From the NCBI GenBank assembly GCA_977030845.1, contig OZ365109.1, positions 62,062,001 through 62,126,000 on the forward strand: a stretch of DNA of 64,000 bases. The letters run 5' to 3'. This DNA is from Fimbriosthenelais zetlandica (Eukaryota). The translations under genes and the position numbers were made by a program. A model generated the notes under the pieces. The model was not told the origin of the DNA and searched no databases. It saw only the letters and a program-made list of their open reading frames with translations. Below are positions 47,901 to 62,642 of this stretch, in pieces; positions within the stretch are counted from its first letter, which is position 1, and each line of letters opens with the position of its first letter.

Positions 47901-49379
47901 TTGTTTACTCCATATCAGAGCAAACACATGATGATACTGAACTCAATAACAGGATAATATATTAATTCACATTATTGTAATTGACTACTTCCATTTAACT
48001 TAAGTGTTAATTTATTCTATGTTGAGTTTCCATCTAGACTGAGTTCTGACTGTCGCCTATTAATTATAGTGAGATAGTATTTCTATTTTAGGCTATTTTT
48101 TTCTCTTCTGTAGTGAATGCATGTGTAACTGATTAAGAAAATGTTAACGCCTAGTGCGTGACTAACATAGAATTGACAGCTACTGCCATGACTTCATGAG
48201 TACCACACACATGTTATAGTGGATGACTGTAAGCTACCGTTTATGGATAAAATATTAGTTAATCAAATCAATATTTAAATGCATTCAAACGATTTTGTAT
48301 TTTCGTATAAGAATGCATTGCCTAATCAATTACACGAGATATATCATGGTCTGCATTGGCGCGAACGGATTGAGCGAAGAACACCTCCGCCATCTACCGG
48401 TCTGTCAATGAAGATCTCACAACCATCAGGCCTGATCCTATGGCTATGAATCCTGCTTACGGGGTTTCATATTGAGCAAATGATATGAGAATGGCTAACA
48501 GACTTGCTCTTATGAATTCTACATAAAGCTATCCTTGTTGCGTCACGAAGATATTGTAAAAATATTGTTTGCATCAAGTGTTTCAATTTGCCATTCTTTA
48601 GGTCTATCATATGAAAGCGGCGACTGGCGCAAGTAATTAAAGATATCTACAAATTTCAAATTTCCCGATTTATTTTCGATTTATAAAATTTAAATTAGAC
48701 AAGCAAGTAAGCCCTACACAATTAATTGTCCTTTCAATTTCCACATCCGTAAAATGTTTCATTCATGCTTCGAATAACATGAATACAAGTGCCATAATCA
48801 ATGAGTACATGTATACATATAATTATTCACAACCCCCTCAGGAAGTAAAAAAAGAAGGCTTCGAAGAATTGAAAAATTTATATACAGTTTCATACCCTGA
48901 AATCAAAGTTTCTTATCTCAGTGATGATATTTTCGTGGAGCCATAGTTTTGCGAATGAATATTTCGCGCATCCTTGGGGATATCATGTAAACGAATTAAT
49001 TGTTCTTATGTCATTCACTTCCATAGTCATATGACTCGGTCATACATTCCTTTGATTCGAATAAACTTAATATTAGAGTGCTTATATTTGACTTTAAACT
49101 CGCGAAATTATGCTCAAGCTATCGTGGTCTTGCACATCCTTTCCCAGGGATCAGTCTATGACCTATTTTTTCATTGAAGATTCCTCTATTTCATTGGTAC
49201 CTGTTTGTAAGGATAGTCCTACCAAAAGGTACTGGTAGAATTAATATTTATACTTTCAAACACATATTGGGATGCAGCTGAGTTAAAAGAAGAGAAGAAC
49301 AAAGGGTGTGTGATGTGTTATTTATGGTTGTTTTTATGTTGTCTATTGATGCTCCCTTGTTTCTTTACCACTCTCTAGT

Positions 49380-49495
49380 GTTGGAGTACAGAAAACGCTG
49401 CCTTCATCCGGGCACCTGCCATGAGCAATTACCTCCGTGCTTCGCGAAAATTTGTTGACTTGAATATATTTATACTCCCCGGGAAGGCCATTGAG
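49380..49495 (+). other. Candidate 5' UTR exon of gene A (left boundary approximate)
   Basis: CpG-rich patch ending in a strong donor GAG|GTAAGA at 49495/49496. The next good acceptor is TTTTAATTACAG at 50501. Confidence 0.45.
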
Positions 49496-50535
49496 GTAAG
49501 ATTAGACGACTTTTTAATCCTTGGCCGATTATAGAAGAATCAGAGATGAGTCTTGTGGCATAAAGAGTGTCTAAGGCGTGGGATGGAGTTTAATGTTTCA
49601 AGGGTTGCGTGTGGGAATTTTCGCGTGTATAGAACGCTGGTGCTGTCTATCGTTTGGTAGGCTGGCGGTCGTTAGAACTAGACGGGATGTTCGTCTGCTT
49701 TTCCCTCTAAAACAAAGGTTTTATTCTAAAATAATGTACCATATTTACAGGTCAATTAAAAAATGACCCATAGTCCCAGTGGCATTGTAATTTACTAGTT
49801 TTGTAATGAATATCGGGGTACGGAACCCGAACCTAGGATAGAACAGGGCGGCTGGACCTCGGACCAAAGCGAGACATATGCTAGCCCGGTGCAGCCCGGT
49901 AACCATAGAATGGGGCCTTGTTTCCCACCAAGGCCTTGTCATAGATTGGCAATTCCCTTGGCATTGACTCCTTTAAATTATAAAATAATCCTTTGGGAGT
50001 AATCTAGCCCCATTTCAGTTACTTTAATGATTTCCGTACTTGGTCCATGGACTTTCTTCAATCCCAGCTGATGAGCTGTTATGTAGTAATATTTCTGCCA
50101 CACTCACCAAACATTGTGGGCGGGGCTAGTTTTCACTTTTTATCATGACATGTCATTAAAATTTATAGCTGACCATATTTCAACAAATAAAGATCCACGT
50201 ATTTACAAGTATGGATTAAAAGCAGATAATTATATTATTTTTTCCTTTTTAAAGGAACGATAGCCTACACATTTTTGTAGGCCAATTAGTAGGCCCTACC
50301 AACCCAGTATTTTTTTTTAATATATAGGGCATATTATAGGCCTATATATTGTCTAACAGAAATAATTATTTTTGAAATATTTTGATCTAAGAATCTCAAA
50401 TATTTCTAGGATATAATTATTGTAGAGATTTAAAATAATTAATTTTAATTAATATGTCCCTATTTTTGTCGAGAAATAAAATAATACTATTTTAATTACA
50501 GTTTATATAAAGAAGGTCATTAAAGTGAAGATTCA

Positions 50536-53500
50536 ATGATGGATGACATAGATGACATACAACCTGGCAGACATAGCCCACCTCCCATGTCACCAGATGA
50601 GGACGATGATGCTCTATCACCCATTCATACAGCGGGAGAAACAGATACAGAAGGTTTAGATAAGATAGAAGACGGGGAGCATCCAGATGTACCCGTAGTG
50701 GAACCAGAGGCCGTACCAGACGAGGAACTCCTTCATGAAGATCTAGATACCACAGGAGCAGATCCTGTTAGGGTTAAACCCAAGACAGCTTCATTAAGAC
50801 TTCAGACCAGAGGAGGCCGAATGAGAGCTGACCAGGTTAAAAAAAATTATTGTTTTATTTCCCCCAAAAGGACCTTTTCATGAATGAATACGTTTTTCCT
50901 TTATCTCAATAAGTAATTTGTTTAATAGTAAAATGAGTGTTTTTTTTAAAATTTTATATTTAATTCTATATTTAGTTGTACTAAGATCATTTGATCTCTT
51001 TCTAAATTTGTAATTATTCATTATTTGCGGTGGTAAATTTGGCTTTTGATATAAATTACTAAAATTGGTAATTTTTAGGTAAATGAATGTCCAAAGTGCA
51101 ATCTAGATATCTACATATAAAGTTGATCACATCTTATTTTATAATATCACCTGAATGATTTTCTTTTACATTGTCTATTTTCAGGACCGTATAAAATCCA
51201 TATTGAAGGAGGCTATAGTCAGTATGTGTAATTCGGGCCTCTACTACCAGACAGAAATGAGAATAGAGGGACTTCTCGGTATCACGCTGGACCGACGTGA
51301 GGTCATCATTGTTAACGTCCATGACATCGTACGGACGTCAGAATCTGATGATGAATACACGTAAGTTAAATGAGTACAGTAACACAAAAGGCTTAAAAAG
51401 AAAAGGTAAATAATTACACGTAAGTTAAATGAATAAGGTAAAAAAAATAAACGTAACTAAGTTAAATGAGTACGTGGATAAGTTGAAGACACGTAAAATG
51501 AATAGGCCTCTCCACATATTATAAATAAATCAATTTATTCACGTCAGTTAAATTAATACGACTCCCGTAAATTTCAAGACGGGTATTTTAAGTCAACAAA
51601 CAGCTGATGGATTCTAATTTAATGGACCTGAAGCATTTTCGATCAAATCTGAAAGTAGGCCTAAATAACTCATTGGTTTGAGGATGAAAGCTATCATTAT
51701 GTTATTACTTATTTCATGTACCATTATTTCGAAATCCAAATTGATAATAATATTGAATAATTTTTTAGTACCAAGATCCCATACACACCAACCATCCACA
51801 AAAGAAAGATGACGAGACCGTGGCGTATAGCTGGCCGTCAGTACATTAAGCGTGGTCCTGGACGCCGACCCAAATACGACCCTGGCGAACCCCTCCTCAA
51901 ACGCCGGAAAGACACCGAAGATGGGGATGAGGTGGACATCTTTGGTACCTCCAGCTCGCGAGGGGAGGCTGGGATGACAGGCTCGAGTCCCCGTCAGGGA
52001 CAAGAAAACCAAGATGGAGATGGGAGCCACTCTGAGGAAGGAAATCTGAATAATCTAGCCCAGGCTGTGGCCTGGTATACTTCAGTGGACGAGGAGGCCA
52101 AGTCCGGTGATGGTTCATCTTTACTCAATGATCACGTGAGTGTATGTGAAAATGATTTAATTCTCTCTATCAAATTAATCAATAAAATTAATTATGTCAG
52201 AAACAGAAAATCTGAATTATTAGAAATTTAACTGTAGGTCTAGTATCATTTGAGTAGCCTAACCCAATATTATCATTTCCATTATTTTTTAGTTCTAGAA
52301 AATTGATTGATGGATTAGGGACATAATTTTTACATTATATTTCTAACTTTCAATAACTATTTTATCGTATTATAAATTTGCCTTATATGAATTCTCCAAA
52401 TTTACAAAACTAGCTTTATTATACAATATGATAATATCTTTCCAGGGTTTACCTCTACCTGATCCACTTACAAGCCCGGACAAAGCAGAGATGATCAGGT
52501 TCCTGAATGAACAAGTGGGTCGGGGATATGCCCGGAAACAAGAAAAGAAGAAAAAACGTGGTGAATACAACAACTACACTGCAGAAATGCGTGCCAAGAT
52601 CGGCCAGTTTGCTGTGGAACACGGCATAGGTAAAGCCATGAAGCATTTTAAGACTTTGTTTGGTCGGCCGATTAGTGAGAGCACAGTCAGGTGTATGAGA
52701 AAGGCGTATCTTGATGCTAAGAGGGAAACTCAGGCTGACGAGGTGGTGGTACTGCCTAAAAAAGACAGAGGCAGGCCGCTGATGCTGAAGGAATATGACA
52801 CCGATGTCATGGATTATATTGAAAACCTGAGGAGAAATGGAGCTCAGATTAATGTTCAAATCGTCATGGATGCAGCCAGAGGAGTTCTCCTTCATAAAGA
52901 CAAAGCAAAGCTGAAGGAATTCGGAGGCTCCATTGAAATCACAAAGGCCTGGGCTCAGTCATTTATGGCCAGAAAGGGATTGCATGGTCTTGGTAGACGA
53001 AGGAGAAAATCGGAAGGACAGAAAAGTCCAAAGAAGAAGAAAGATCAGCAAAGCAGCAGCAATCCAGGAGAGTCCTCACATATTACACATCAACAACAAC
53101 AGCAACAGCAGCAGCAGCAACAACAACAGCAACAACAACAACCACCAACACATCAACCTCAACACACACAAGGTCTACCTCAACAACAGCAACAGCAACA
53201 ACCACCACCACCACCTCACCATCCAGGAGCTGCTGTACCCGGCCAACAGCAAGGACAACCCAACACCCACCAACAAAACCTCTCACAACACCCAACACCA
53301 GTCCACACTCCGCATTCTCAGGACCATGAAGCCCATCTACACAATCTAGATGTGTGTACCCCACCACCGGCACACCAAGATCAGAGAAATAACACTATGG
53401 TATTCCCTGAGAGACAGATGCACCCAGGTGCTGATCCAATGCATGATCACAGGAATGCTATGGTGTTTGGGGATAGGCAGCCTCATCATGGTGAACATGT

Positions 53501-53672
53501 AATGCACGATCACACAGGGAGGATGGTCTTCCCGGATCGACACCCAATGACCACAGCGAGCATGCAGGATCCACATCATATGTTCTTCCCTGAAAGACTC
53601 AACCTGAACCCAGTTCCTGCTGCTCATTGTTCATTGTGGCCCTCACAAAATATACATCATAAAAATAACTGA
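50536..53672 (+). CDS. Gene A: putative transcription factor (GLLGITxD N-terminal domain + AT-hook-like motif + domesticated pogo/DDE_1-type transposase HTH region + polyQ/His-rich tail), about 689 aa
   Basis: Exons 50536-50835, 51185-51360, 51769-52135 and 52446-53672. All introns are GT-AG with matching phases (0, 2, 0). The joined 2070 nt give one open frame (RMRADQ|DRIKSIL...DEYT|TKIPY...LLNDH|GLPLPDP...HHKNN*). An acceptor at 50500-50501 precedes the ATG. Confidence 0.85.
51185..51331 (+). other. GLLGITxD N-terminal domain, copy in gene A
   Basis: DRIKSILKEAIVSMCNSGLYYQTEMRIEGLLGITLDRREVIIVNVHDIV aligns without gaps to 57634-57780 with 20/49 identities (hand count). Confidence 0.85.
52446..52982 (+). 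other. Transposase-derived bipartite HTH DNA-binding region (pogo/Tc1-mariner superfamily, DDE_1 type; second HTH is CENP-B/HTH_Tnp_Tc5-like)
   Basis: The motif order LPDP...KKRGEYNNYTAEMRAKIGQFAVEHG...SESTVR...LPKKDRGRPL...YIENLRRNGAQINVQIVMDAARG...GGSIEITKAWAQSFMARKG matches my recollection of the N-terminal half of marine-invertebrate DDE_1 transposases. No DDE region follows. Confidence 0.75.
53091..53141 (+). repeat. CAA/CAG repeat encoding 17 consecutive Gln in gene A
   Basis: Read directly: mixed caa/cag codons in frame with exon 4. Confidence 0.95.
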
Positions 53673-54042
53673 GACCAGTGGACACCAGTAGATAATGTAA
53701 GACCACCTGTGGAGGATATTATGATGAGGCATGGCACTGTCAAATACGAACCTCCTTGAAATTTATGACCCTTTACAAGGTGTACTATAATTCCTCATAA
53801 AGGATTGGGCATGCAAATTCATAATAATATTTTTACGTTTAAGTGCCACTTATTTGCTGAGTACTGGTCTTATTTTTCTACTGGAATGTCCATGAAGTAA
53901 TCGGAATTATATTGCAAATTTTTCTTTTGGAGACAAAAATATTGAATCAACTCCTTCCAATGCGCTGATTGTGTTCAAGTTTAGTTGATGGTTCTATAAT
54001 TATTGTTGCATGGATGCAATCGATTTATCCTCAGGAAATGCT

Positions 54043-54094
54043 CAATTTGGTATCGTGGTCACACAATTTGGTATCGTGGTCACACAATTTGGTA
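54043..54094 (+). repeat. 21-bp tandem repeat, about 2.5 copies
   Basis: CAATTTGGTATCGTGGTCACA twice plus a partial copy. Confidence 0.9.
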
Positions 54095-56639
54095 ACCATA
54101 AGCGAAGATGGCAAACGTTCAGTGGGATTTATCCCTGGTGGGATACAATAATACCAGTCGAGTTCTCCATGTGTCTGTATCAGGGCTGATTTGAAAATGT
54201 TCACTGTCACATTGTTAATGTGTTAGTCTGGTATAAAACCATCTATGTTGTCTGTCAAACGAGGTTCATATATATGATAAAGCCTGTAGGCCTATTCATT
54301 GTTCTTTTCTACCATTGAATTATACGCTTATTTCTGTTTGTTGAAAAAGTATCACGTTGAATTACATAATACCGTATGTAATAGAAATCTACTTAATGAT
54401 ATTGAATTATATTCGGACAAATGATATTAAATTACATATGAGCAGATGTAATTTATATGGGATAGAATTCAAATGGTAATCTTTGTAAGGTGAATTAGAA
54501 ATGGATACTGTAACCTTGATGTGGTCAAATTTTTATTACGTAGGCTTATTTAGACATACCGGTACCTGTGTGCGCAGCAAACTATGATATGCAAGAACAG
54601 CTATGTAATGTACTCAATATGGAAAAAGATAGCTTTAATGGCCTATAGATGCCAAATCGTTTAATAGAATCCTCAGGGTTGAAACAAGACCTTTGTCACC
54701 AATGTACTTGATCTGATCCGTAGCCTTGTGCACTACATAATAATTATAATCTAGGTTGCACAGGCTTAAATTACTATAGATATTGTATATGTATATTAGT
54801 ACCACTAACACTTACTGAAATATAATGAGAACTGTATCCTTTATAACGTTTTGATATAATGAAATGCCCTCTATGAAAAGTAGAATTAACAAATAATTGT
54901 TAATCTATACATGTATAATGTACATTTTTAATGCTGAGTAGGACCATTTAGTCCTTACCAAAGTGCTTAGTTATTCATTGATTATTTATAGATGAATATT
55001 AAATTTGTAATATTAATTTGGATATTTAATCTCCTCAATCCCACTAATGATTAGCTATAAATACTAAATCGCTATGATTAGCAATAAAATGTAGTTTACT
55101 CGTAGGTCCGCGATGCTTTATGTATTCTAGTTGTACCCAGACATTTTCATGTACCGATATATGAAGAATAAGTTAATTTAACAGAAAGCTACTGGCACTG
55201 TTACCTCAAATACATACCTCAAATTATACAAAGAAATAGCTTTCTAATTTCCTTGTATTTCAGATATTGATAAATGTTGATAAGAATGTATCGTAGTGTA
55301 AGAAGAATCTAATCCTGTTCTGTCTCGTTCACTACCTTATGTATATTACTGGTACACACATTTTTAATATTACCGGATTATTCGGACGCTGAGTTACTTG
55401 TTTCAATCCTTAACCTTCAGAATTGTCGAGAATGGCTGGAGAACTTGGAAAACATGAACTCTTTTAGTCGATCGTTGCATTCCAAAGCAAACTTAAATTG
55501 TTCGTCCTTTGCTTATTTCTTATCATGTCGGGGTTTCTTTTGTAAGTTTCGATGATAAATCTTTATTATACGTTTTACTTTTTTATATTTTATGTTATAT
55601 CGCAGGTTATATATATACTATATATATCTATTTTGTCTTTCAACCGGTTTTAAAAATTAAAATCAGACAAACTCCTGTTACTATAATAATTATAGGTTAT
55701 ATGTAAGCCTACTTGATTTCCTTCAATGTTTCTTTTGTTATAATAACAGTAGGATTCCGTGTAGAATTCAATGGGGTCCTCTTCTGGTTCATTCATTTTG
55801 ATATTAAAATTTTGTTATGAATTGTATTAGATCTATTAGTTCTTTAGTTATAAGTGTATAGATCTATCCCTTTAGAATCTTTGATGAAGGCTTTATGATC
55901 AAGTGTCCATTTATGTAAGTCAACATACAAGTCTGTTTCTGTGGTCCATGCATAAATTTAAGGCTATTTAGTTGTTATAATGATAATTATATTTCCTACA
56001 TACAGCCTCTAACTTTTCGGATTTTAGTCCTTAGGCCTATAAATATAATTGTCGCTGATAACGTTGAAAGCTTTTACATATTGAACGATTCCATCTTGCT
56101 TGATAGATCCATAGAAGTAGACTTCTATGATAGATCTGCGCTGAGCGCCCGATATCAGTTTTGTTTTCCTATTGTTTATGATTGTTTGGAGATACCTGAT
56201 TGATTGATAGACCTGCCTACTTATATTGATGTTTAAACCAAAAAATCTATAAGTTAGGCCTACTCAATCTGTACAGGAAAATATTTCAGATACCAATTAA
56301 ACTTATTTCTATAGAACATCTTTCTTGTTCATTATTATGAATCCAACTCCCTCGAATACCCCTGTGGGCTCCTGTTAAGTGGAATGTTGATAGGGGTATT
56401 GTTAGTTAGAATATCAGTTGGGCCTAATAATTGGTGATTGTAGCATGTATAGGTCTATACTATAGTATAGCCTACCTCAGGCTAGGCTAAAACCTAGGCA
56501 TATTCCCGTCCCTGCAATAGACTTAAACTAGCCCATGTTTCATAAATAATGTGTAATTTCGGATAAACAATACAGTTTGATGGGAAATTGAACTTTTTCA
56601 TGACACAAATTTCAGTTCGCCTAGCCCTCAGCTCCGACA

Positions 56640-57603: not shown

Positions 57604-59472
57604 ATGAGTGCAGAGAGGGAGAAATCTTCCAAAGAGCGTGTGAGGGCCATCCTGTCTGAGTCAGTCTCCGTCCTCTGTCGCACCATGCTTCAATACGATG
57701 CCGAGCTGAGTATCCGCGGTCTGCTGGGAATCACAGTGGATAACCGAGATGTATTCCTGGTAGACATCCTGGAGACGGTTCGCGGTCGAAACCACGATGT
57801 ATCAGGCGTAGCTGTCATAGACCCGGGTAAAGAGGACTCAGAGGCAGACATGTTAGTGGTGGACGACTCGGACATGGAAGAGAAAGGACATGCTAATTCT
57901 CTAAACCACTCTCACCAAAACCCACACATGCAGGAAAAACCTGGCAAATGTGCTGAGAACATGACCATCTCTCAAGGCCAGACTCAGGCGGCTCCGAACA
58001 ATGAACAAGCACATGGAGAAGTTGTACAAATAATGAACCCTGAATCTCTAGCCAGGCAACCTATAGGTCTAAAAGAACTTGGTGATGCAGCTTTTGCCAG
58101 AAGTATTAGTCACTTCCATCAGCAGATTGCTAATAAAGCAGTGAACATGAAATCAAATGTCAGTATGCAGGGTGCGATGAGTAGGGTGGCAGAGGATGCC
58201 AATGATATGTCAAACGCCAATGTCATCAGTTCACAGGCTTTGAATATGTCAACGACTACTCAAGTGGAATCAGTATCAACAGAGCAGAATGATGATCCTA
58301 ACTTCAGGCTACAGAATCATGAGACTGAGAGACAAAGTGTTGTCCACAAACATGAGGATGATACGAGGGAGGGTGAGCCAGAGCAGCAAACCACTATGTA
58401 TACACTATGTGCTTGTGAAAGTACTGGAGATGCTGCGGACTGTTCAATGAAGCATAATGCTAACCAGGCTCAGACCGTGTGGAGTCATAGTGAGACAGGT
58501 CAGCGTTCAACGGACTATGTGGCAGTAGCCTCCCAAGCCAATGTTACACCTATAAGCCAGTCAACCACTGTCCCTGTATCCCAAGTCCACACAGCAGCTA
58601 ACTCTTCCAACCCCGTCCTCACCACCCAAGACCCTTATCAACTCTGGAACAAGGCAAACAGTCAACAGCAGAACACCACTATGACTACATCAGCTAATTG
58701 GTCCAGTCTTCCTATAGCTGCTGCCGCCGCCGCTGCTGCAGCTGCCTCTTCTGTCCCAACCACAACTTGGTCTGGTCAGACACAAAGTCAGGCACAAACC
58801 GTGACTGTTGCTACTAGTACTGAAGTGATGGCTTCAGCTCCAATACAGTCACTCTACTCCTCGTTGCCAGAGACTATCAGCAGTGCCATATTACATACTA
58901 CTTACTCCCAAGGAGGCAGCACCCCAAAAAACTTGAGAGGTGAAGGGGTTTTTCCATGCAAACTCTGCAGTCGTGTTTTCACCTACAAGAAGTCTAAAGC
59001 CAGACACATGAAGAGACATCTGGGACAGTTTTACACATGTGAAGTGTGTAAAAAGACTTTATGTCGCAAAGATGTTCTCGCACGCCATCAACACAACGTT
59101 CACGGCATCAAGATAGAGACGAGTGGAGAGACGAGCAAGTCTCCGCAGAAGTCGCAGGGCGAGGAGCCCACCACCATTTCATTGCTTTCACAGGCCAACG
59201 AAGTTGCTGCTAATAATACTTATCCGACATCGCAGTCTGCAGGACACGGACAGCGAAGCTATGAAGCAGTGGAGTTTACCAACACCAACACACCTCAACT
59301 GACAGTACCCAGGCCACCTCTTGCTGCTGTAGTCACCTCCCTCTCTCAACCCATCCAGTCCTTCCTCACACTCAATCACACTGCTATACAAGCCCATCAG
59401 AGCCCCAATCAAACCAGCGTCCAGTCAAATGTACAGGCATCCCTTCATCATGGCGCTAGTCCATCGACATAA
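57604..59472 (+). CDS. Gene B: C2H2 zinc-finger protein with GLLGITxD N-terminal domain, 622 aa, single coding exon
   Basis: 622-aa ORF. Two fingers, FPCKLCSRVFTYKKSKARHMKRH and YTCEVCKKTLCRKDVLARHQHNVH, at about 58951-59103. Poly-Ala at 58717-58746. An acceptor TTTTTTTCAG ends at 57595, 8 nt before the ATG. Confidence 0.9.
   Translation: MSAEREKSSKERVRAILSESVSVLCRTMLQYDAELSIRGLLGITVDNRDVFLVDILETVRGRNHDVSGVAVIDPGKEDSEADMLVVDDSDMEEKGHANSLNHSHQNPHMQEKPGKCAENMTISQGQTQAAPNNEQAHGEVVQIMNPESLARQPIGLKELGDAAFARSISHFHQQIANKAVNMKSNVSMQGAMSRVAEDANDMSNANVISSQALNMSTTTQVESVSTEQNDDPNFRLQNHETERQSVVHKHEDDTREGEPEQQTTMYTLCACESTGDAADCSMKHNANQAQTVWSHSETGQRSTDYVAVASQANVTPISQSTTVPVSQVHTAANSSNPVLTTQDPYQLWNKANSQQQNTTMTTSANWSSLPIAAAAAAAAAASSVPTTTWSGQTQSQAQTVTVATSTEVMASAPIQSLYSSLPETISSAILHTTYSQGGSTPKNLRGEGVFPCKLCSRVFTYKKSKARHMKRHLGQFYTCEVCKKTLCRKDVLARHQHNVHGIKIETSGETSKSPQKSQGEEPTTISLLSQANEVAANNTYPTSQSAGHGQRSYEAVEFTNTNTPQLTVPRPPLAAVVTSLSQPIQSFLTLNHTAIQAHQSPNQTSVQSNVQASLHHGASPST
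57634..57780 (+). other. GLLGITxD N-terminal domain, copy in gene B
   Basis: ERVRAILSESVSVLCRTMLQYDAELSIRGLLGITVDNRDVFLVDILETV, homologous to 51185-51331. Confidence 0.85.
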
Positions 59473-60357: not shown

Positions 60358-62642
60358 TTATTCTAACTGGATGCCTATCTCGGTTTCAAGATCTAGATCA
60401 TCGTCCTCTAATTCTCCGTCCTCCATTTCTAATTCTCCAGTTTTACTGGCCTCAGTCTCTAGGGCTGCTTTAGGAACATTGTCGCTTTTGATAGCAGAGA
60501 ACACATCCTGTGGTCGCTTGACAGCTGCTAACTGGACACGTTTAGCTTTTAGTATTTTCCTTTTGCGTCTGTAAAATAATACAAAAAGGATATTATAAAA
60601 TAGTTTTTGAATTATTTTGATAAAGGATAGAGCTATGCACACATTTTAAGTAGTAAATAATGAAATATATTTTAATATTTTTAGGAACACCTATTACGAA
60701 TGTCTCTGTTCTGGAGCATTTACTCACTGTTTGTCAAGTTCCCGTTCTTCCTCAAATATTTTGTCCAAATCTTCCTTCCGGATATGTCGATCCTCACGGA
60801 GGAGGAAAAGAAAGACTCCACCGGGAGTTCTTCTCCGGGATCCATTCTGAAGTTTTGCCAAGGGAAAATCATCAACAGTTCAAATCATTTTAAATTATTT
60901 AAAAATTCTAAAGTCCATATGAAATTCATTCTAGAGTGTGAATTCGTAATTCTTACCTTAATCATCAGGCCCCCTGTGGATTCAATAGTTATTGTTTCAG
61001 ACATCAAATCGACAGCCCTTCTCGGTCCAAGGATATCTACCACACGAGCTGAAAAATATGCAACAATGGATCTTAGAACAAAATACATATATGAAACAAC
61101 ATTGTTGTAAAAAATGTCAATTATAAATATATCAGTGATTTATTATGCCAACTTTTACAGATGTAATAATTTCATCACCTGTAATATGACTGAATTATAA
61201 TTTAGAATTGAGAACAAGAATCTTCAACTTACTCATTAAACCGACTTTTGGCTCCTTCAGATTGTGTGTCAAGGCAGCAACTATCTTTTCTGTGGAATCC
61301 GTTTCAGTCACTTGTATCAAATCAAGTGGTAGGGTCTCACTTCCAGTTGTTTCACGCTTCTTCCCCAACCTTTCCTTTACATTTTTCTTTTTGTTCTTAT
61401 CACGTTTTCGTTTAAGAGTATACATGACTAATTCTTTCTGGAAGTCATCGACTTCACCTCTCTTACTCTGAGGTCGACTCTTATGGTATCTTCTATCTTC
61501 ACCACTATCAGAATCGCTGTCACTTTTACATGAACCAAGTCTATCTTTTACCGAAAGCTTGGGTAACTTTTTCTCAGGAATAGTCCCAAAGGTTTCAATT
61601 TCAAACAATCCTTCTTGGTCCTTGGCCTCTTTGTCTTCCGTATCAGGGCTCTTACTTTCCATTTCCACTTCGACAGGCTTTTTTTGCTCTTTTGTTTCCT
61701 TACTTTCTTCATCATCCCCAGATTCACCAAAGAGATCATCGTCGTATGTAATATTAGAGTGTCTGGGTAATTGATAAGCCTCCACATTTCTATAACTGAG
61801 AGCAGATAAGTCTTTTTCGACTGCAAAACTTCCTATTTCTTGGGTCAGCACCTGTTCTGCTAAAACATTACCCCAAACGTTTTTTGGCTTTGATTGAGAT
61901 TGCTGTGCTTTGCTCCTATCAAGATTCCAGACGTCTTTCCCGCTTGCACCCTTTCCCTCAGTGTTTTGAAAGCCCAGATCCGAGGGACCACGATGTTTAG
62001 ATTGCAACAGAGGGTTTTTGAAATTTGTCCGGCTGTCTTGCGGCTTGTAGCATTTACGTTTGGGAAAACCTTCGCCCTCAACATCACTGTCACTTTCTTC
62101 AGATTCAGATGAAAGTCCCGGAACTTGACTTTTTCTAAAAGCTTCAACTGGAGTCGGGGCAGATGGTCTTGGTAGGCATACAGGATTAAATGACGGCGCA
62201 GCACCTGCTTTGGTATGCTGAAAGAACAACAGAATGGTAATATAGTTTTATAATTTATAGAAAATGTGGTAAACTCTAAATATAAATTTAACACATTTTT
62301 ATCACCCCCTCCTCCTGGCCTGGATCCAGAATTTTTCAGAAGGGTTGGGGGAGCCGGGTTAGGGTTAGGGTAATACGGTTAACCGTCAAAAAATGGGAGG
62401 GGTGGGGTTCAGTCTGAAGAACACTCTGATTCTGAACAGTTAGTTAGCCTACAACTTTACTTGGTGATTCTGATTTTCTGAACAAATTCGAATACAAACT
62501 CGGTGGTATCATTACAAATAATTGAAATGCATTTAAAAATGAACACCGTAAACCACATGAATACATTAGAAACTCTCCAAATTTGACAAAAACAGACCTG
62601 TTCTGTTTCACTCCCCGAGTCAGACAGCTCTCCGTCCTCCAT
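60358..62642 (-). CDS. PHAX: Phosphorylated adapter RNA export protein, 483 aa
   Basis: Exons 62642-62598, 62217-61233, 61048-60957, 60846-60728 and 60568-60358. All introns are GT-AG with consistent phases, 1452 nt in total. Diagnostic motifs: MEDGELSDS, KNVWGNVLAEQ, VKERLG, LKEPK..LM, RVVDILG...A, and NGSRRRTPGGVFL of the PHAX RNA-binding domain. Confidence 0.96.

Follow-up and report, generated by a model that had tools for sequence, protein, structure and literature searches.

Does a gene that ends in the DNA-binding region of a transposase belong to its host, or is it what a transposon has left behind? This question is raised by a 64,000-nt stretch of the genome of Fimbriosthenelais zetlandica (contig OZ365109.1, positions 62,062,001 to 62,126,000 of the forward strand; hereafter the window). 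The gene concerned, called gene A here, is modelled as four exons on the + strand, and an earlier note on the same DNA had described its last exon as a captured pogo/DDE_1-type DNA-binding region in a lineage-specific, domesticated transcription factor. The reading that we favor, with a probability of roughly 0.8, is that gene A is an old host-transposase fusion, in which the N-terminal DNA-binding region of a DD35D pogo-superfamily transposase forms the last exon behind exons for a host N-terminal module (N-module). It is a further case of a known gene-making route, by which POGK, KRABINER, and other transcription factors arose as fusions of host and transposase parts. What is established for this gene is its homology and fold, its gene structure, an architecture that has been conserved, and purifying selection.

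Transposase parentage and fold of the last exon

Exon 4 (52446..53672) begins at a phase-0 acceptor, ttccag|GGT at 52445/52446, which follows a polypyrimidine tract, and is single-copy within the window. Its open frame extends over 408 codons (52446-53669) to a stop codon at 53670-53672, and codons 1-179 of this frame (52446-52982) encode the region with two helix-turn-helix (HTH) modules. The GLPLPDP motif and an N-terminal helix occupy aa 1-45 (52446..52580) and lead through KKKKRGEY into HTH module 1 (HTH1; aa 46-95, 52581..52730), a three-helix unit similar to psq, Brinker, and CENP-B_N. A linker, LPKKDRGRPLML (52752..52787), with an invariant G109 and an RGRP core, connects it with the HTH_Tnp_Tc5-like HTH module 2 (HTH2; aa 117-176, 52794..52973), whose invariant block QIVMDAARGVLLH..K.KLKEFGG and recognition helix ITKAWAQSF are the most constrained parts. 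At the point where its relatives run on into the DDE domain, exon 4 continues with a basic stretch, RRRRKSEGQKSPKKKK (52995..53042), which may have a role like that of a nuclear localization signal, and then with a low-complexity C-terminal tail (53043..53672; 20% Q, 14% P, and 13% H) containing polyglutamine (polyQ; 53087-53202), a Q/P/H-rich region, four [MF][VF]F[PG][ED]R repeats, and the stop codon. These repeats are located at aa 599, 620, 641, and 660 of the 689-aa gene model, inside its His-rich part, and were not seen in the tails of orthologues.

The transposase origin of exon 4 is well supported by comparison with complete transposases. Residues 35-197 of exon 4 align with aa 50-204 of P0053, a 474-aa protein matching Pfam DDE_1 with 59 bits, at 46% identity (E 3e-42), and the similarity stops where the catalytic part of P0053 begins (aa 204). 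A search of a library of 1.84 billion representatives with a profile of the HTH region found 3373 proteins at E<=1e-3, and among the best 150 of these, 12 have a complete catalytic part behind the same HTH region; DDE_1 scores above cut-off in P0053, P0125, P0076, P0091, P0092, P0099, P0113, P0042, P0047, and P0078. All three catalytic aspartates are kept in 7 of the 12 full-length relatives. These intact relatives with the DD35D triad are DDE_1 transposases of about 475 aa, and their D2-D3 spacing is 35 in six (P0053, P0125, P0076, P0091, P0092, and P0113) and 33 in P0099. The DD35D signature has been given for Passer and Fot, and POGK is derived from Passer (Gao et al., PMC7386202); to judge from the triad, the parental family is probably Passer-like. 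In addition, GLPLPDP at the start of exon 4 corresponds to an N-terminal segment, "GLPDP ... AN.EV" with AN.EV in a helix, that is conserved in the transposases 10-40 residues from their start, and exon 4 therefore covers nearly the whole pre-catalytic part of a transposase. It would start about 15-30 codons into the former transposase open reading frame (ORF) and end just short of the catalytic domain, so that the LPDP motif, the N-terminal helix, HTH1, the GRP linker, and HTH2 would be spliced as one unit behind the N-module exons.

The fold leads to the same superfamily. An AlphaFold model of the HTH region built from 79 homologues reached a mean confidence (pLDDT) of 93.5, and an earlier model from 10 sequences (pLDDT 67) was discarded as too weak. 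The model consists of a long N-terminal helix (aa 11-34), three helices in HTH1 (46-59, 61-72, and 78-95), a disordered linker with LPKKDRGRPLML at aa 103-114, and three helices in HTH2 (117-130, 137-151, and 167-176) with a small hairpin. Its top match in the Protein Data Bank (PDB) is DNA-bound CENP-B(1-129), 1hlv_A (Foldseek E 0.013, probability 0.99), with a Z of 7.2 over 114 aligned residues in a VIA comparison, and the next are the DNA-binding domain of SETMAR on its terminal inverted repeat (TIR), Pax5, and Mos1. Among Swiss-Prot models, nearly all of the 30 Foldseek matches are N-terminal DNA-binding domains of pogo-derived proteins, with POGK as the best (E 1.2e-4) and JRK, TIGD1-7, CENP-B, Cbh1/2, Abp1, and PDC2 among the others. 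An Atlas feature search of exon 4 likewise led to HTH_Tnp_Tc5, CENP-B, BrkDBD, and psq clusters (score 0.93, 182 shared features).

Most of what the earlier note had read from the letters of this exon is borne out: a phase-0 acceptor exactly at GLPLPDP, a frame intact for 408 codons, two HTH modules joined by an RGRP linker, both three-helix in the model, and a pogo/DDE_1-type DNA-binding region. It had also called for the closest intact transposon, and P0053 and other DD35D proteins are related transposases with an intact triad. Its statement that a basic stretch, polyQ, and a His-rich tail replace the DDE domain holds as well; exon 4 has no DDE_1 match in Pfam, its sequence is basic and then Q/P/H-rich beyond aa ~180, and the alignment to P0053 ends at aa 197. 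Nor are there credible inverted repeats flanking exon 4 at 49000-56000; the pairs found there were all AT-rich, 14-27 nt long, and matched at 70-93%. The earlier note, too, had seen no flanking TIRs.

Gene structure, conservation, and selection

Intron 3 (52136..52445, + strand) divides the host-derived exons of gene A from the transposase-derived exon. Upstream of it, putative exon 1 (50536..50835) starts with ATG, encodes an acidic N-terminal extension of 100 codons, and ends with the phase-0 donor CAG|gttaaa; this is the least secure piece of the model, and the orthologues begin straight at the N-module. Exon 2 (51185..51360; acceptor ttttcag, donor AC|gtaagt) encodes the N-module (DRIKSILKEAIVSMCNSGLYYQTEMRIEGLLGITLDRREVIIVNVHDIV) of about 50 aa, and its junction with exon 3 falls inside a codon (AC|T). 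In exon 3 (51769..52135), a GRP-type motif (IKRGPGRRPKYDP, KRRK) lies in a basic segment, which is followed by a Ser/Gly-rich acidic linker; the exon ends with the phase-0 donor CAC|gtgagt at 52135/52136. All three introns of the four-exon model are GT-AG, and the joined frame of 689 codons is stop-free (~689 aa). Exon 3 is collinear with the orthologous protein P0005, as is the gene A model across 414 columns (E 2.5e-82). Intron 2 opens with about five degenerate copies of a donor-containing motif, CACGTAAGTTAAATGA, within 51357-51560 (at about 51357, 51417, 51451, 51490, and 51540), which might serve as alternative donors.

The closest relatives of exon 4 show 56-66% identity and fall into three sub-clades, which together form one supported clade (99/93) outside the transposase group. 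For each sub-clade there is evidence of the combination of N-module and HTH region, from the window, L002, and P0005. In L002, the N-module exon lies 2.3 kb 5′ of the HTH exon, the acceptor of which is only 3 nt from the window's position; the counterpart of intron 3 in L004 is shifted by about 5 codons, again with a near-same acceptor position. In P0005, a single ORF of 593 aa includes both parts; its contig, of 4.1 kb, stops 16 nt past an AATAAA signal. This contig appears to be transcript-like, and at the corresponding place the related genome L004 is interrupted by an intron. Within 10 kb upstream of the HTH exon in L004 and L005, no N-module exon was found.

Selection on this region could be estimated from the sole unsaturated pair, L006 and L009, in which the HTH region gave a dN of 0.059, a dS of 0.635, and a dN/dS (the ratio of non-synonymous to synonymous divergence) of 0.09, and the tail of exon 4 gave 0.25, i.e., it evolves faster than the HTH region. 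For L002 and L007, pN in the HTH region is 0.016 and pS is 0.80, the latter being saturated, and synonymous sites are indeed saturated between the sub-clades and even within them. Since this saturation separates at least three fusion-bearing lineages, to which the distant P0146 (described below) is added, the fusion must be old. A reading of exon 4 as a decaying transposon fragment was rejected on the selection data.

These results support the idea of the earlier note that the fusion behaves as a host gene: a non-transposase module lies upstream, the dN/dS of about 0.09 is, as it had anticipated for orthologues, well under 1, and an orthologous transcript-like contig joins both parts in one ORF. 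Its term "lineage-specific" has to be given up, as the fusion occurs in at least three lineages with saturated synonymous sites and also in the distant, intron-less P0146. Of the syntenic orthologues that it had asked for, ones with the same architecture exist; in L010, gene A does not stand within 10 kb of the orthologue of the zinc-finger gene that is its neighbor in the window.

The N-module, related fusions, and rival readings

The N-module has no Pfam match and no named family among its Atlas neighbors. The module of exon 2 has 47% identity with its counterparts in P0005 and L002; the value is 38% for a neighboring single-exon paralogue in the window (57604..59472, + strand), which encodes 622 aa with the N-module at its N-terminus and two C2H2 zinc fingers near aa 450-500. 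P0158-P0160, the orthologues of this C2H2 gene, show 84-97% identity in the N-module and ~57% overall, and the N-module is therefore the most conserved part of the gene. Its presence there means that it is not bound to the transposase domain. A hidden Markov model of the N-module matches P0005, P0146, and P0047 (E 5e-7) and has no match in any of the 7 transposases whose triad is intact. A different subtype from the window's is found in P0047, whose N-module shows 78% identity with the N-terminus of P0165, an unrelated protein of 820 aa that has six or more C2H2 fingers. Because it has been found on zinc-finger genes in two independent settings, the N-module is a host module and not part of a transposon.

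Two further items lie near these genes in the window. A perfect 21-bp tandem repeat of 2.5 copies (CAATTTGGTATCGTGGTCACA) is located at 54043-54094, about 370 bp 3′ of the stop codon of gene A, and an ORF of 344 aa at 61195-62229 (- strand) is rich in Ser, Asp, Glu, and Lys. A search of the window against Rfam gave no match.

Outside the window clade, the same combination occurs in P0146 and P0047. P0146 is an intron-less 387-aa gene with an N-module and the HTH region (37% identity), found in a compact, AT-rich genome (32% GC). At L003 4905-7164 it immediately follows a multi-C2H2 gene of the same orientation, an arrangement that echoes the pairing of gene A with the C2H2 gene in the window. 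P0047 (L011 10001-12040) is one 679-aa ORF in which the N-module and the HTH region are followed by a DDE_1-like domain lacking the catalytic D1 and D3. Its nearest relatives (39% identity) are of transposase length (477-487 aa), with DDE_1 and without an N-module, and two of them represent clusters of 24 and 29 sequences. This hints that P0047 is a second capture of the same transposase family, with the dead catalytic domain retained as in POGK. TIRs of the parental family were not recognizable around P0053 (a 2.2-kb contig) or P0047. Just 5′ of P0047, at L011 9173-9734, long inverted repeats lie nested within one another (57 nt at 95%, 53 nt at 83%, and 35 nt at 89%), which resemble a miniature inverted-repeat transposable element or a hairpin.

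A further group comprises about 40 multi-HTH proteins (P0013-P0041 and others; 430-2070 aa), which have 2-4 extra copies of HTH1 and a C-terminus that corresponds exactly to the HTH1-HTH2 unit. They form one large clade (99/89), with proteins of 700-2000 aa, which looks like a separate domesticated family, and one AlphaFold DB entry of this type comes from the California timema (Timema, an insect). In the tree, a branch with 84/59 support has all transposases and P0047 on one side and, on the other, the multi-HTH clade, P0146, and the window clade. By the approximately unbiased (AU) test, a single clade of all N-module bearers is not rejected (p 0.31), nor is the same clade with the multi-HTH group added (p 0.23).

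Several points weigh against gene A as an old fusion of host and transposase parts. On the window protein alone, Pfam HTH_Tnp_Tc5 reaches 14-16.4 bits at aa 119-180, against a cut-off of 22.2, and PDB sequence searches with the protein and two profiles gave chance-level matches only. All five orthologues tested show this weak HTH_Tnp_Tc5 match too, at the same position, and 22 of the 79 family members have a match (best 1.8e-6). With the window protein below threshold, the transposase nature of exon 4 therefore rests on homologues and fold and not on Pfam; of the earlier note's prediction that profile searches would find the transposase HTH and no DDE_1, the lack of DDE_1 is borne out, and for HTH_Tnp_Tc5 the window protein itself stays below the cut-off (16.4 vs 22.2 bits). 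The junction 52135-52446 is proposed from canonical splice signals, frame continuity, and orthologues. In the tree, which is unrooted, the split of the domesticated groups from the transposases is only moderately supported (84/59), and a direction from transposon to host is suggested by architecture and distribution. Finally, L010, which has a clear orthologue of the C2H2 neighbor, is without gene A within 10 kb on either side of it, and the local arrangement is therefore not conserved there.

Three other explanations have been weighed. According to one, the whole gene is a truncated transposase, the N-module having been part of the parental transposase and passed later to C2H2 genes. The uninterrupted ORF of P0047, with N-module, HTH region, and DDE_1-like domain, speaks for it, but this protein lacks two of the catalytic aspartates, its N-module is close to that of a multi-C2H2 protein while its nearest transposases at 39% have no such module, and none of the seven intact-triad transposases carries one. 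In addition, the N-module and the HTH exon lie on opposite sides of an intron in both the window and L002, and we regard this explanation as very improbable. Hardly more credible is that exon 4 in this species is an independent single-exon gene starting from an ATG at 52428, or an unexpressed relic, with no splicing to the N-module exons. An in-frame ATG does exist 6 codons upstream of the acceptor. Against it stand the acceptor and polypyrimidine tract at a near-same position in L002 and L004, the GT-AG introns and the single 689-aa frame collinear with P0005, and the presence of both parts in one ORF in P0005 and P0146; strong purifying selection argues against a relic.

The third explanation stands at close to an even chance, if slightly below it, and alters the history of the family rather than the nature of the window gene. 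It holds that the fusion arose several times, N-module genes having captured this one transposase family separately in the window clade, P0146, and P0047. In its favor, the HTH region of P0047 groups within the transposases, P0047 has the other N-module subtype, near that of a C2H2 protein, and P0146 lies outside the window clade. On the other hand, the AU test leaves the single clade standing with or without the multi-HTH group, and both P0146 and P0047 are on long branches. A more ambitious version, which we put forward tentatively and consider rather unlikely, is that the N-module is an undescribed old partner domain of animal transcription factors, usually carried on C2H2 fingers and comparable in role with KRAB, ZAD, SCAN, or BTB, and that it captured Passer-like pogo transposases more than once: of one capture, nothing but the DNA-binding region would survive (in the window clade and perhaps in P0146 and the multi-HTH clade), and another would persist as a full but catalytically dead transposase (P0047).

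As a host-transposase fusion, gene A likely encodes a sequence-specific transcription factor. DNA binding, the role of each part, and splicing in this species are inferred. The bipartite HTH would bind DNA in the manner of CENP-B or a paired domain. Minor-groove contacts and nuclear import would be added by the GRP linker together with the basic patches, the N-module would mediate protein-protein contacts (oligomerization or cofactor recruitment), and the Q/P/H-rich tail would serve as an effector region. The product might conceivably bind the TIRs of the parental family, as the earlier note had supposed; from the stem of the clade, which is long and conserved, it seems that gene A has its own targets.

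Relation to known systems

Among nematode proteins, the AT hook-containing ATTF-4 of C. elegans (Pfam Attf-4-like) offers a lead only: Foldseek aligns HTH2 (model residues 76-179) to ATTF-4 280-385 at 25% identity, an Attf-4-like cluster is among the Atlas neighbors of the multi-HTH relatives, and both proteins have GRP-type basic motifs, but Attf-4-like was not among the Pfam matches of exon 4, which were listed up to E = 10. In BTB-psq proteins such as pipsqueak, an HTH module stands behind a protein-interaction domain. Drosophila cag and CG4570 are built from the DNA-binding module only (PMC13548663). These proteins resemble gene A in that only the HTH module of a Tc1/mariner-pogo transposase is kept, in some cases behind a protein-interaction domain; their N-terminal partner is different, and the likeness is at the level of gene type and not of sequence comparison.

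The bipartite pogo-type HTH fold of exon 4 is shared with CENP-B, the top PDB match, as well as with fission yeast Abp1/Cbh1/Cbh2, JRK, and the TIGD proteins. However, those proteins come from complete transposase ORFs, keep the DDE_1 fold, have no N-module, and are only 13-21% identical to exon 4. KRABINER and other tetrapod host-transposase fusions are similar in the proposed route, in which splicing captures a transposase DNA-binding domain behind host exons and a new transcription factor results (Cosby et al., bioRxiv 10.1101/2020.05.07.082677). In contrast to them, the fusion here is in another animal group, has another partner domain, and is old and conserved rather than recent. In POGK, too, a host domain of effector type is fused N-terminally to a pogo transposase region whose bipartite DNA-binding domain is of the BrkDBD/HTH_Tnp_Tc5 type; POGK is the best structural match in Swiss-Prot (E 1.2e-4), and the parental type is DD35D in both (PMC7386202). 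Nevertheless, POGK retains the whole transposase with a degenerate DDE_1 behind KRAB and is limited to mammals, whereas the window gene consists of the DNA-binding region and an unnamed N-module and is found in deeply diverged non-vertebrate lineages; for POGK, P0047 is a closer analogue than gene A.

Transposase capture is a known way to make transcription factors, reported mostly in vertebrates and Drosophila, and gene A lies outside both groups. It does not offer a new principle but a clean, conserved case with intact relatives in the parental transposase family and an apparent intermediate (P0047, with its dead DDE domain), and therewith a concrete system in which to study the re-targeting of a domesticated transposase DNA-binding domain and what it is that the N-module recruits. 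The more interesting point is the unnamed N-module itself, which may have been paired with this transposase family repeatedly.

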